From: Epithemia pelagica
Lineage: Eukaryota > Protista > Bacillariophyta
Direction of reading: 5' to 3'
Length of the DNA stretch: 64,000 nucleotides
Assembly (NCBI GenBank): GCA_946965045.2
Contig: OX337240.1
Location: 744,001-808,000 of the forward strand
The stretch's first letter is position 1; each line of letters starts with the position of its first letter. The position numbers and the translations under genes are program-made. This document shows, in pieces, positions 46,720 through 52,180 of the stretch. Below the pieces are notes generated by a model. That model had not been told where the DNA came from, searched no databases, and saw only the letters and a program-made list of their open reading frames with translations.

Positions 46720-47160
46720 CTAGGCTCTCAATAGGCAAGCTCCACCGGCTGCCTTTATTTTCTTTTCTGCCAACTTGGAGAAATATTTCGCCTTGACAAT
46801 TACAGGAACAGTGATTTGACCACCTCCCAAAAGCTTGAAGTATCCCTTTTCCACCAAATCGATCACGGGAGCCTTGCCGTCACCGTTCTTGGCAGCTTCG
46901 TACACACCATCCCCAGCAACATTGAAAAGCTTATCCAAGTTCATTGTTGGAGTGTAGCTGCGGTTTCTCAAGACATGAAACTGTCGCATACCAATCTTTC
47001 CAAAGTAACCCGGGTGAAATTTATCAAACAAAATACGGTGGTGATGTTGACCTCCAGCATTACCACGACCACCGGGATGCTTACGGTGCTTTCCAATACG
47101 ACCGTGACCAGCCGAAACGTGGCCTCTCTTCTTTCTGTTCTTGTGCAAGCGGGTCGGCAT
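46720..47160 (-). CDS. RPL27A: 60S ribosomal protein L27a (uL15)
   Basis: [42 protein letters not shown]...[12 protein letters not shown]. Confidence 0.97.
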
Positions 47161-47867
47161 GGTCTGTTCGTACAAAACAAGGACCAAGGAGAGGTTGTGT
47201 GAGAATGGATCGATCCCTCTCGTTGTCGCGTTATTTTGCGCTCATATGGCACTCCAATCTCTCTCAACGTCCCTCTCTACGATACTTCGTTCGAATACAA
47301 GGAAAACTACAGACGCAGAACTTTCTCAAAGGAACTGGGCTTCATCTTACCTCTCTATGTCGGGTGTCGGGCTTATTGGTCCAAACGACTCTGTTACATG
47401 CGGCGTCAAAACACACCACTTACCGCCTTACTAACAAAAGTTCGATCCGTGTCTCAAAAGTACGACTGAAATATTTGTCCCTGTCGCGACCTACCCACTG
47501 TTGACCGCTACAGATAGGAGTACCCATCAGATGAAGTGGCTACTATACTCCTACTATATTCCTGAATGCTTTCAAATCATCCATCAACTGGACACTCCGA
47601 GAGCCTATTGATCTACAACAGATTGAACAGATGGGTTGGATGGTGGTTCTGTTGTGGCACAAGCTGGGTCTCTTCCCTCTCCGCCTGAACACTTTCTTGT
47701 GTCGTAATTGCTAAACTATACTACCATTTCTCGAACGTGATTGGACCTCCTCTTGCGTTGCTTATCACGACAGAATAAATGTGTATAGCATTCTATTACA
47801 TAGGATCAATCCAGAATATTGTCAGTTTAGGTTGAAATATACAGCCTTACGTTCTATTTCGTTGAAA

Positions 47868-50800
47868 CTAGTCTTCGACGACTCGTCCGTAGAACTTGAC
47901 AGATTCACGGATTTTACCACGACATTCAGGACACTTGTAACGAAGTTTCTTCAGGGTCTTGGATGTTGCACAGGTTTGACAAAGACATGGATGCCCACAT
48001 GGTACGAGGATATGCGAAACAGGATTTTCCCAACAAATGACACACATCTTTGTGTTCGCCGAACTCTCGCTCGGGGAAGAGGAAGCTTGTTTACTCGCTG
48101 GTGACTTTTCCCGAACTAGCAGAGAATCCATTTCCTTGACTAACGTGTTCGCTTCATCGGAGACACGTCCACTACGTGCTACCTGCCCTCCCGCTGGTCG
48201 ACGAGAGGAAGCATGGGTTGGTGTCCTTTGTACCGTCCTTGACGCTCTTGGAGAGTCAAGAAGTGGGGACGTGTGCTGACTTGATGCCAGTGAAGATTGA
48301 GGAATCCTCGCTCGATGTCGTGTATTTCTAATGGTGTGTTCGTGACCTCCCATGTTACTTCTATTGGATCCACTTCTGTTCGATTCTGTTGCAGATTGCT
48401 GTTCAACGTTCGGGACTCTCCTCTGCTCAAACTGCACATTTGATGAATATTGTTGTTGATGCACTCTTTGAGACTGTCTGCGTCCAGCAACCGCGACATC
48501 TGTTGCGGCTGAATCGTCCGTGTTTGAATTTAAGGACGATTGCCTGTTGACCGCAGGGACTCTTCTGGTCGGTCGTTCTCGTATAGTATTCACCGGAGAA
48601 CCGGCTGGGCTTGAAAGAACACGCGTGTGGTGGTGCTGGCGACGGTAATTTGAATTACGAGAACGCCGTGGTCTAGTTCCGTAGGCACCACCTGGAAAAT
48701 AATTGGTCGTAGGCACAGTCCCCCCTGGGCTTTGACCGGGTTGCCTTCTTGCTCTCACAATACGGCGAGATGATGAGCTCAGGACTCGATAGGTAATCAC
48801 GTACTCGGGAAAAGATTGAGACGGTCTGCGAATGGAATAAATTTTGCTTTGGTTGGCCCCCCGTTTGCACGTGGAATGATAGTGAAGTTCATGAGGTGGT
48901 ACATCGGGTTCATTAATTTCCCTCTCGTCAACCCTTCCCAATGCCACCCTGGACAACACAAGCTGACGAATTTCACCCCCATTGTTTGGCATAAGGTACG
49001 CATTCTGGTGACTTGACGCCGAACTCTCAACCAGGAAAAAGCCTTGAGTAGTTGAGAAAAGCTCGTCGTATTTGCTGATGGAATAAACCAAGTCAGGTAT
49101 TGGAGACTCTGTCAGAGTGCCAAGGAATAGACGCTTTTCGTTGACAATTCCCCAGTTTTGTTCTGCCACTCGCTCACGTTGAGAGGCATATCGCTTCCAC
49201 ATTGCCGCTGATTGAACCCTCTTGATCGATTCGACTCTACACGCCATTGTATCCATGCCGCCCACGATGGAGTGGAACGGTTTCAGAACTAACTCTCGTT
49301 CGTTCGTGTCCACAACCTCAACCAAAACACCATTGTTCATTTCCCAAGAATCAGGTGGAGGAATTGGTTTTCGAGGTGGAACTCCTCGTGCCAAATGCAC
49401 AGGTGCGTTAGGTATTCCAACAGGTATAGGGGGAATGACACGTTTCACTTTGGGTGCCACAAAAACCATGTTGTTGTTTCTTTCATGCACCCCGACAACG
49501 ACAAAACAACCGTAGATGGTTTGTCCCAATGAGAGATTCGTATTGGCATCTCCCTTAAGGACGATACCATTGGCCATTCTTGTTTCACTTCCAGCGACCG
49601 ATTCCGGGCCAACCCTAAGCTCATACTTATTTCTGGCACCAATTCGACAGCAGATTGCTTTAGGCACTTCTAAAACTGACATTGGTGGGAATGCAACATC
49701 AGTGTATCCTCCGTCTGGATCAAGCCTGACAACAACGCCAATGCTCCCATTTTCTGGTTGGTAGGAATCGGTTTCAGTTGGAGTCCAATCCGGTCCACTT
49801 TGTACAAACATTCCGAGCTGTACATTGTCGATTGTCACTGGAGCACCAGGCAAGGCGGTCTTTGCGGCCACCACTGTATCCGCTAGCAAAGGACTGCGTG
49901 GATCTTCTTGGAGTGGTTTTTCAATCTGAGAGGGTGCCCACCGTTCGGTGGGCATGGGATCCAGCAATAACTTGACAAGGTTTCGAAGAGCATCCGAGTA
50001 TCCGACAATATGTCGTTGGCTGTTTCCATCAGTACCATTATTCCTGTTTGGTTGCGGAAGCCATGGTAGTCGCAGACACGGTAAGTCGAGAGCGGCATTC
50101 ACCGATTGTCTCTCATTGATATACTCTGCCAACGTTTGTTCGTCCGTCAGATCCACAAGCTTTTTACAGCAAAGCATTTCATACATGATACAGCCAAGAC
50201 CAAAGGCATCAATTTTCTCCACATCCAAACCGGAGTAGTCACTTCGTGCATGGGCGGCTTGAAGTTCCGGAGAGGCGTAAATCTCGGAAAACCCAACACT
50301 TTCTTCTCCAGGCGCCACAGCACTGCCAAAATCCGCAAGAAGGAGCTTGCCTCCGTCGGATCGATCAATGAGAACATTGGAGCTCTTGACGTCATGATGT
50401 GCCACACCTCTTTCATGCGCAAAGGCCAGTGCGGAACTAAGCTGAAGTGCATACCACGCAATTCTTCGTTCTGCATAGGGATCTTGATCTAGCTTGGACT
50501 CAATCTCTTGCGCCAATGTCCCCCCATCGGCATATTTCATGACAAAACAGCCAAATCCTGGACCAGTGAACCAATCTTCAAAGAATACAATAGACAGAGC
50601 TCGGTTCTCGTCACTGGATGAGGCATGGTCGTCATCTAATTGCGAAACCGAATCCAATTCCCTGTTGAATTTCTCTTCCTCCTCCTCCTCATCCCCATCC
50701 AATTCAAACCTCATAAACTTTAACGCTACGAGACGACCAGACCTCTTCTTGGCCAGAAACACACTTCCAAAAGCTCCATGTCCTAGGCATCGGACTTGTT

Positions 50801-50930
50801 GAAACTCCTGATCAATCTGTGCCAGTTGCGTATGTTCGGGGCTTTCTTCCAACTCTACGGAAGAGTCATTCTGGGGTGATCCTGCAGGAGATGTCCCTTC
50901 TTGTTGCCCAGACACTGCCCTTGTCGCCAT
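47868..50930 (-). CDS. Multidomain protein: kinase + MIB/HERC2-like + PARP-catalytic-like + disordered linker + RING (C3HC4)
   Basis: LGHGAFGSV/VALK/HHDVKSSN/DFG/SPE; GMFVQSGPDW..G..G.V..CRIG..NKYEL; IKRVQ...W.RY...NEKRLFLGT..RVALG..Q.FPEYVITY; CVICW..PCGH.C.C..C...CPECR. Confidence 0.8.
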   Translation of the reverse strand: MATRAVSGQQEGTSPAGSPQNDSSVELEESPEHTQLAQIDQEFQQVRCLGHGAFGSVFLAKKRSGRLVALKFMRFELDGDEEEEEEKFNRELDSVSQLDDDHASSSDENRALSIVFFEDWFTGPGFGCFVMKYADGGTLAQEIESKLDQDPYAERRIAWYALQLSSALAFAHERGVAHHDVKSSNVLIDRSDGGKLLLADFGSAVAPGEESVGFSEIYASPELQAAHARSDYSGLDVEKIDAFGLGCIMYEMLCCKKLVDLTDEQTLAEYINERQSVNAALDLPCLRLPWLPQPNRNNGTDGNSQRHIVGYSDALRNLVKLLLDPMPTERWAPSQIEKPLQEDPRSPLLADTVVAAKTALPGAPVTIDNVQLGMFVQSGPDWTPTETDSYQPENGSIGVVVRLDPDGGYTDVAFPPMSVLEVPKAICCRIGARNKYELRVGPESVAGSETRMANGIVLKGDANTNLSLGQTIYGCFVVVGVHERNNNMVFVAPKVKRVIPPIPVGIPNAPVHLARGVPPRKPIPPPDSWEMNNGVLVEVVDTNERELVLKPFHSIVGGMDTMACRVESIKRVQSAAMWKRYASQRERVAEQNWGIVNEKRLFLGTLTESPIPDLVYSISKYDELFSTTQGFFLVESSASSHQNAYLMPNNGGEIRQLVLSRVALGRVDEREINEPDVPPHELHYHSTCKRGANQSKIYSIRRPSQSFPEYVITYRVLSSSSRRIVRARRQPGQSPGGTVPTTNYFPGGAYGTRPRRSRNSNYRRQHHHTRVLSSPAGSPVNTIRERPTRRVPAVNRQSSLNSNTDDSAATDVAVAGRRQSQRVHQQQYSSNVQFEQRRVPNVEQQSATESNRSGSNRSNMGGHEHTIRNTRHRARIPQSSLASSQHTSPLLDSPRASRTVQRTPTHASSRRPAGGQVARSGRVSDEANTLVKEMDSLLVREKSPASKQASSSPSESSANTKMCVICWENPVSHILVPCGHPCLCQTCATSKTLKKLRYKCPECRGKIRESVKFYGRVVED

Positions 50931-51517
50931 GGCCTTCGACAAACTCGTTTCTTCAAACTTTGCTGAAAATCTGTGCTCAACGGCAGAAGAAATCTTCCTC
51001 ACCCGTCTTTTCGAGTGAATGGAAAGAACTTCAACAGAAGTTAAAGGTTGATGGAATGGTTTATTGTAATCCTCTGGTATCGGTTTCTCGAGAGATTGTT
51101 TCGGTTCCTATAACCACGTCTCCAAACAAATCCCTCCACAACCAAGACCACAAACAACAAAGAAGAGCTTTCGGAGATTTGTTTGCAAAACTGACAACGG
51201 GGGAGGAGAAGGGCCATCTCTCCAGATTCCTCGCTTCTCTTTGTCTGTTCTGGCTTTCTTTGGATGTGACTGCGGTGATCCCCCCACGCGCGTGCAGGCA
51301 AGCCGGCATCTCTCGTGCGTTGAAACGGATGGAAAGCGCGCACCTACCGACTACATAATTCACAGCTTTTCTTTGAGATGCGCTGCCCCCCCTCTTTTTT
51401 GACACACCCCTGGATCAGAAACACGATTCGGAAAAAGGTGTTCCACCTTCCGTCCCATTTCATCATCTCTCTCTTGCTGTCAACATCTCTCTAGAGAATC
51501 ATATCATTTTGCACAAG

Positions 51518-52180
51518 ATGTTGCGGTCCGTCTTTTGCCTTTTACTGCTTCTCTCCTTGCTGGAGTTGAGTCTCTGTCGATTGTCAGATTCCAGTCATGA
51601 GGATTCGCACGTCCCGATCGACCAACAGCGGAAGGATCTGTCCAAGAACACGACCTCCATGTGTGAACGCATCCATCCAGAAGATCTCCCGGAAGAATGT
51701 TCTTGTCATGATAAGCCACCGTTGGGATTGGTGGTCAATTGTTTGAAAGAGTTTGACTCGGAATTTTTCAATGACACGATTGGCATGTCCATTGATGTGG
51801 ATCCCTGCAACCCCCAAGGATCCAGTGTTTCCGTCTATGTGACGGAATTGAATCATCATATCAGTTATGCGATTGCCTCGGTACGGGCAGGAGAAGAAAA
51901 GGATTTTCCCATTCCGGGCTTGTCCATTATTGTACCGGGTTTGGGTCACGTGGGCATTGATGTGGCCATTTTCATTGCGGGCAACCCGGACACGCTCTTG
52001 ATGAAGATTGGTTTGAATGCTTGTGCGGTAATGCCCCACAGGACCATTTGTGCGTCGTCCATTCCAGGACTCAATAACATTTTCCCTTGGTGGGTCTTGT
52101 CCGGAAGCTATCATTTTGGTGACATTTGTGAATCAGTCATGGCAGCCAAAGATATGGACATGGCTGTCGCCGAACAGTAA
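51518..52180 (+). CDS. Hypothetical secreted Cys-containing protein
   Basis: Hydrophobic signal peptide MLRSVFCLLLLLSLL and spaced cysteines; no family recognised. Confidence 0.65.
   Translation: MLRSVFCLLLLLSLLELSLCRLSDSSHEDSHVPIDQQRKDLSKNTTSMCERIHPEDLPEECSCHDKPPLGLVVNCLKEFDSEFFNDTIGMSIDVDPCNPQGSSVSVYVTELNHHISYAIASVRAGEEKDFPIPGLSIIVPGLGHVGIDVAIFIAGNPDTLLMKIGLNACAVMPHRTICASSIPGLNNIFPWWVLSGSYHFGDICESVMAAKDMDMAVAEQ

Follow-up and report, generated by a model that had tools for sequence, protein, structure and literature searches.

A diatom gene for a predicted kinase-coupled RING ubiquitin ligase carrying a PARP-like module

A gene on the minus strand of a 64,000-nucleotide stretch of the Epithemia pelagica genome (contig OX337240.1, positions 744,001 to 808,000, or C16:744001-808000; hereafter the window) encodes one chain in which a serine/threonine kinase, an MIB_HERC2-like barrel, a PARP fold and a RING follow one another. 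We consider this to be, probably, a genuine single-copy diatom gene whose product is a RING ubiquitin ligase coupled to a kinase and bearing a PARP-like module without catalytic function. Such a protein would unite, in one chain, phosphorylation and ubiquitin ligation with a module derived from PARP, and literature searches for the four-domain combination found no description of it.

The open reading frame (ORF) is single and uninterrupted. It extends from 47868 to 51002 on the minus strand, the strand of every feature below unless stated otherwise, and counts 1044 codons from an upstream GTG with no internal stop. Within it lies a complete single-exon coding sequence (47868-50930; ATG at 50930) of 1020 amino acids plus a stop. 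The 1020-residue product on record, P0001, is identical to the annotated window product; residues are given here in ORF numbering, which equals P0001 numbering plus 24. A sequence-only reading of this stretch had proposed that all four modules belong to one protein, and each was found in the single ORF where that reading had placed it. The assembly comprises 60.5 Mb in 23 contigs, and the DNA surrounding the gene in the window is eukaryotic. Searches of the same genome for paralogues, with the middle region of the protein and with the related, RING-less P0035 (see below), returned the gene itself and unrelated kinases only; the gene is therefore single-copy.

The modules and their relatives

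The serine/threonine kinase domain (49923-50801) matches Pfam Pkinase (PF00069) over residues 68-360 with an E-value of 2e-33 and 116.3 bits against a cut-off of 31.7. The sequence-only reading had judged it intact from K, HHD..K..N and DFG, and its motifs bear this out: present are the glycine-rich loop GHGAFGSV (50760-50783), VALK with the catalytic lysine (50715-50729), the alphaC glutamate in FNRE, the catalytic box HHDVKSSN (50376-50399), DFG (50322-50333) and ASPE at the APE position (50265-50276). The catalytic residues are nearly invariant across the RING-bearing relatives. The kinase is non-RD, with HHD in place of HRD; the latter occurs in none of 41 aligned relatives, so that the whole family is non-RD.

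Attempts to place the kinase in a named group, by solved relatives and by a word search with the kinase region, failed. Its relatives of solved structure are generic (AKT and Aurora, at approximately 1e-18), and the word search returned approximately 78 family members, after which significance falls from about 1e-38 to about 1e-25 and the list continues with bacterial Hanks-type kinases of some 30% identity. The label 'NEK6-subfamily', found among the source annotations of the relatives, is thus unsupported, since the solved relatives are generic and beyond the family only the bacterial kinases follow.

The other end of the protein is formed by a C3HC4 RING with a short conserved tail (47871-48056). 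All eight zinc ligands are present in its core (47922-48044; CVIC...CGH...CQTC...CPEC), and Pfam zf-C3HC4_3 (PF13920) matches residues 984-1033 at 1e-10 and 41.7 bits (cut-off 27), in agreement with the sequence-only reading. The closest solved RINGs are those of CGRRF1 (5.7e-9), MEX3C (2.4e-8) and cIAP1 (3e-8); cIAP2, MGRN1, MDM2 and XIAP are also among them. Judged by these matches the RING is of the cIAP/MDM2/MEX3C type. In several of these RINGs a short C-terminal tail serves dimerisation and engagement of E2~Ub (ubiquitin-charged E2), and the tail of the diatom protein, ...YGRVVED, is conserved across the family.

Downstream of the kinase lies a divergent MIB_HERC2 (SH3-like) barrel (49611-49814) that contains a GPDW motif (49785-49796). 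We took this assignment from homologues and fold models because the direct Pfam scan was empty: the isolated window segment gave no match to MIB_HERC2 (PF06701; gathering score 33.5 bits) even at E ≤ 10. The same Pfam family matches 25 of 36 homologues at E < 0.01, and P0035 is the only one of nine tabulated homologues to score above the cut-off (40.9 versus 33.5 bits). The seven homologue matches for which coordinates were taken all fall on ORF residues 397-464, that is, nucleotides 49611-49814, GPDW included. A search of the whole genome with Pfam MIB_HERC2 gave no match, but neither did the controls of that search, so that this negative carries no information.

An AlphaFold2 (AF2) model of residues 384-540 (157 residues; predicted local distance difference test, pLDDT, 86) was compared by VIA-align to 48,161 representative chains. 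MIB1, through its first Mib-herc2 domain, ranked first (4xi6; Z 7.6, 23% identity) and HECTD1 second (2dk3; Z 6.5), while HERC2 (9l8y) scored Z 5.4; identity of the barrel to the Mib-herc2 domains of these three proteins is 21-23%. The ranking by VIA-align was clearer than that by Foldseek, in which the best match to the same model was HECTD1 (2dk3) at E 0.022 and no match reached E ≤ 0.001. For a small SH3-like barrel these are modest Z values, and for that reason the assignment depends jointly on fold rank and on sequence transitivity; on these grounds the GPDW-containing MIB/HERC2-like module of the sequence-only reading is retained, with no direct Pfam match for the window segment.

A search with the middle region recovered 35 relatives with the same domain order, and one with the kinase region approximately 78. 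All relatives with an organism name attached are diatoms, with both centric and pennate forms represented: Epithemia clementina, Seminavis robusta (two copies), Bacillariaceae metagenome-assembled genomes, Skeletonema menzelii, a eukprot CCRYP gene model, Thalassiosira profunda, T. exigua and Chaetoceros tenuissimus. The restriction of the family to diatoms is provisional and rests on the minority of word-search matches that are so named. The E. clementina protein is 58% identical to the window protein in the middle region and 75% in the kinase. Four MMETSP transcripts marked 'type:complete' (P0068, P0111, P0117 and P0119), on contigs of approximately 2.8 kb, place the four domains on one mRNA in relatives. 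Taken from predicted domains, the order serine/threonine kinase, MIB_HERC2 barrel, PARP fold, long Ser/Arg-rich linker and C-terminal RING is fixed in this diatom family.

The relatives are labelled at source as 'serine/threonine protein kinase', 'NEK6-subfamily protein kinase', 'RECEPTOR-LIKE PROTEIN KINASE-like 1' or 'hypothetical protein'; PARP or MIB appears in none of these names, and the architecture is accordingly not one that is already widely annotated. Phaeodactylum tricornutum and Thalassiosira pseudonana came out as PARP-less in an early survey (Citarelli et al. 2010, PMC2964712), and a later one reported PARPs, among diatoms, in T. oceanica only (Perina et al. 2014, PMC4245714). 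The present family shows a divergent PARP fold to be widespread in diatoms nonetheless, inside proteins annotated as plain kinases.

The E. pelagica genome also contains a canonical PARP of 664 amino acids (142.6 bits), in which a PARP catalytic domain is joined to WWE, WGR and PARP_reg, at G000:C7:1933391-1935385 (L001:100-2094) on the plus strand.

The PARP fold and its degenerate triad

The PARP catalytic-fold domain occupies 48777-49361 (ORF residues 548-742), on the evidence of phmmer, Foldseek and alignments. The match of the isolated segment to Pfam PARP (PF00644) is sub-threshold (20.0 bits, E 5e-4; cut-off 26.7); among relatives the same profile scores 64.9 bits in P0035 and 29.4 bits in P0034. 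Searched by phmmer against solved structures, the segment matches tankyrase-2 at 7e-7 and PARP12/15 at 5e-6, with tankyrase, PARP12, PARP14 and PARP15 together spanning 7e-7 to 3e-5. An AF2 model of residues 360-760 (pLDDT 85) finds the tankyrase-1 catalytic domain as its Foldseek match (E 1.7e-12; template-modelling score, TM, 0.69), with tankyrase-2 close behind. The ESM Atlas returned weak PARP clusters only (0.85), at best a lead. By both sequence and fold model, the domain has the ADP-ribosyltransferase fold common to solved PARPs. Its description as 'PARP12/14-type' in the sequence-only reading needs amendment: PARP12, PARP14 and PARP15 come next, but tankyrase is closest by both measures. 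For each of the two middle segments a match that is weak in the window protein becomes clear via homologues and fold models.

Alignment to tankyrase-2 shows what has happened to the catalytic residues. The LFHGS of tankyrase-2 reads LFLGT (49116-49130), with leucine replacing histidine at codon 49122-49124, exactly where LFLGT had been noticed in place of LFHGT; GIYFAE reads GFFLVE (49026-49043), with phenylalanine replacing the triad tyrosine; and PEYLITY reads PEYVITY (48789-48809), with the triad glutamate kept. In place of the H-Y-E or H-Y-x triad that binds NAD+ (nicotinamide adenine dinucleotide) and serves catalysis, the window protein has L-F-E. The histidine and tyrosine orient NAD+, and PARP9 and PARP13, which are without the histidine, are inactive (PMC5322727); TASOR, ZAP and RCD1 are functional pseudo-PARPs (PMC7532188). 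The domain should be filed as a predicted pseudo-PARP rather than an enzyme, which the sequence-only reading had thought probable. It is still conserved above the level of the linker (37% versus 18% identity), and this suggests that it has been kept for a non-catalytic purpose.

The history of the triad was followed on a maximum-likelihood tree of the MIB-PARP region (42 rows, 374 columns; quick method, no rows dropped). The tree splits 35 RING-bearing rows from seven RING-less rows with 100% support. The RING-less group (P0035 and P0037-P0042) surfaced in a word search seeded with P0035, the most canonical member. These proteins have the kinase, MIB_HERC2 and PARP domains in the same order, end some 10 residues after PEYLITY and have neither linker nor RING; at 36% identity over the full length they are the nearest evolutionary relative. 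The genome search seeded with P0035 found no member of this clade in E. pelagica.

All seven RING-less rows keep H-Y-E. The 16 rows without the histidine lie, without exception, within the RING clade, where the position is taken by Leu, Ile, Met, Phe, Asn, Ala, Cys or Trp; on the tree the presence or absence of the histidine changes at least eight times. The triad tyrosine is retained in only two of the 35 RING-clade rows. The nearest relative of the window protein, Epithemia P0002, is H-Q-E and so keeps the histidine that the L-F-E window protein is without. Among the RING-less proteins, the sub-clade of P0035, P0037 and P0038 has a decayed kinase catalytic loop (HYNLNPKG, YYDLNPQS and SYDLNPHR), the reverse of the RING clade, all of whose members have this loop intact. 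We read the pattern in the triad as relaxed selection on nucleotide chemistry with the fold retained, which would be the signature of a pseudo-enzyme. The two clades amount to a natural experiment: the NAD+ site decays in proteins with the RING and persists in those without it, and in one sub-clade of the latter it is the kinase that decays. The role of a PARP fold after loss of enzyme function thereby becomes directly testable in a transformable algal group.

It is unlikely that the PARP-like domain still works on nucleotides, either as a reader of ADP-ribose or NAD+ or in a Deltex-like manner, with the adjacent RING, joining ubiquitin to ADP-ribose. In that case the protein would connect ADP-ribosylation with both ubiquitination and phosphorylation. 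The near-invariance of the PEY glutamate across the RING clade speaks for such activity, as do the retention of the glycine after the histidine position and of a Ser-rich stretch aligned to tankyrase S1068. The canonical WWE-WGR-PARP enzyme of this genome could write the mark, and PARP9-DTX3L offers a precedent for cross-talk between a PARP and a ubiquitin ligase (E3) (PMC5322727). Yet the two residues that orient NAD+ are here leucine and phenylalanine, the conservation of PEY may be structural, and the known PARPs without the histidine are inactive (PMC5322727, PMC7532188). The histidine is missing in several separate lineages and the tyrosine in 33 of 35 members, as expected in the absence of selection for nucleotide binding. 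Such loss across the clade argues against a requirement for nucleotide, and the 'ADP-ribose or NAD sensing' offered by the sequence-only reading finds no support.

Quite doubtful, in our estimate, is a broader scheme in which the sister clades are a diverged writer/effector pair through which diatoms wire ADP-ribosylation to ubiquitination. An active H-Y-E ADP-ribosyltransferase, often with a decayed kinase, would come from the RING-less clade; the RING clade, which keeps its kinase, would use the decayed PARP pocket, with its conserved glutamate, beside the RING to recognise or ubiquitinate ADP-ribosylated clients. If true, this would amount to tankyrase-RNF146 or PARP9-DTX3L recast as a single chain that also takes input from a kinase. 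The E. pelagica genome is without the RING-less partner but has the canonical WWE-WGR-PARP enzyme.

That the domain, in spite of L-F-E, has full mono- or poly-ADP-ribosyltransferase activity we regard as very improbable; it would place three enzymatic writers in the chain. The closeness of the fold to tankyrase, the retained glutamate, the conservative change from tyrosine to phenylalanine and the seemingly active H-Y-E sister clade can be cited in its favour. Set against these is the variety of residues at the histidine position, indicative of drift and not of a functional substitute, and no enzyme of the PARP family is known to us to work when the histidine is missing. Precedents for inactivity are PARP9 and PARP13 (PMC5322727).

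An artefact, be it read-through of adjacent genes or a decaying pseudogene, has next to no probability: only the unusual domain mix and the low-complexity linker of approximately 230 amino acids speak for one, and we rejected both the gene-fusion and the pseudogene reading on the intact frame of 1044 stop-free codons, the same domain order in approximately 78 relatives, complete transcripts of about 2.8 kb among them, and the conserved catalytic residues of kinase and RING.

Proposed action and known systems

For the kinase-coupled RING ligase that we favor, the following scheme may be envisaged. The MIB_HERC2 barrel and the non-catalytic PARP-like domain would act as surfaces on which a client docks; the kinase would phosphorylate the client, its own Ser-rich linker, or both; and the RING, possibly dimeric via its C-terminal tail, would recruit E2~ubiquitin and mark the client. 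The PARP-like domain would not act as an ADP-ribosyltransferase; its part would be that of a scaffold or interaction module, like its counterparts in ZAP/PARP13, TASOR and plant RCD1.

Several points weigh against this scheme. The Z values of the MIB barrel (5.4-7.6) are in the range of generic matches among small SH3-like barrels, and the window protein reaches the Pfam gathering threshold of neither MIB_HERC2 nor PARP. Between barrel and PARP fold lie a small beta sub-domain and a Pro-rich spacer (49371-49610; 29% mean identity to relatives), whose strands are confidently modelled; the sub-domain is without an assigned fold, the fold searches having barely probed it. The RING clade has kept the catalytic glutamate (PEY) almost without exception and the histidine in about half of its members, so that some residual nucleotide-related role of the family is conceivable. 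Lastly, the coupling of kinase, docking domains and RING is one that we infer from domain content.

Of known proteins, the nearest architectural analogue is Arabidopsis KEG (KEEP ON GOING), in which RING, kinase, ankyrin and HERC2-like repeats are found in a single chain (PMC3697954). It is the only well-studied E3 to unite RING, kinase and HERC2-like repeats, and sets a precedent for a kinase-coupled monomeric RING ligase. However, in KEG the RING is N-terminal, ankyrin and numerous HERC2-like repeats are present and the PARP fold is missing, whereas the diatom protein consists of a kinase, one MIB barrel, a PARP fold and a C-terminal RING, with no ankyrin match in Pfam. Descent from KEG is not indicated: no KEG-like protein occurs among the 120 best kinase-domain matches.

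Mind bomb shares the barrel, and MIB1 likewise ends in RINGs of the zf-C3HC4_3 type; according to the titles of structures 4xi6 and 4xi7, the MIB1 barrel binds substrate tails. Its arrangement differs (MIB_HERC2-ZZ-MIB_HERC2, REP, ankyrin and several C-terminal RINGs) from that of the diatom protein, which has a single barrel and one RING, an added kinase and PARP fold, and no Pfam match to ZZ or ankyrin. HERC2 and HECTD1, the structural neighbors of the barrel, are MIB_HERC2-domain E3 ligases as well, but without the addition of kinase and PARP fold seen here.

A second set of comparisons concerns the PARP fold. ZAP/PARP13, PARP9, TASOR and RCD1/SRO have also kept the fold, lost NAD+-binding residues and put the domain to non-catalytic use (PMC5322727, PMC7532188), and PARP9 works with a RING ligase, DTX3L. 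These pseudo-PARPs carry zinc fingers, macro, WWE or RST domains, and no kinase or RING shares a chain with any of them; the diatom protein, for its part, keeps the glutamate and loses histidine and tyrosine. The tankyrases are the closest solved PARP relatives, and tankyrase-RNF146 is the paradigm for coupling ADP-ribose to RING ubiquitination. In contrast to the diatom protein, tankyrase, PARP12, PARP14 and PARP15 have an intact H-Y-E or H-Y-[ILY], and writer and E3 are separate proteins. Going by domain content, the diatom layout is a new architecture assembled from known domains and a member of none of the families compared. The likeness to an 'innate-immune or stress signalling hub' drawn by the sequence-only reading is one of analogy only.

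Connecting segments and neighboring genes

Kinase and MIB barrel are joined by a conserved connector (49815-49922), whose mean identity to relatives is 60%. The PARP fold is followed immediately by a basic motif, RRIVRARR (48744-48767; family consensus RRxVxARRP). The only conserved element of the linker, it recurs in the tail of the RING-less P0040 and is a candidate for a docking or nuclear-localisation motif.

The remainder of the linker, approximately 230 amino acids rich in Ser, Arg, Gln and Pro and variable in length (48057-48743; linker residues 746-982), has no Pfam match. With 37 Ser and 36 Arg in 235 residues, and with 18% identity and 34% alignment occupancy across relatives, it is probably disordered. 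In the linker of three RING-clade proteins (P0027, P0032 and P0034) Pfam detects a Nup98 GLEBS (Rae1/Gle2-binding) motif (E 1.2e-13; residues 922-943 in P0034), which it does not detect in the window protein.

Two ORFs flank the gene. Upstream of the kinase gene and divergent from it, on the plus strand, is an ORF of 223 amino acids (51509-52180) with a signal-peptide-like hydrophobic N-terminus and several cysteines. Directly downstream and on the same strand as the kinase gene is an ORF of 155 amino acids (46720-47187) whose product, we presume, resembles the cytosolic ribosomal protein uL15/L27a.

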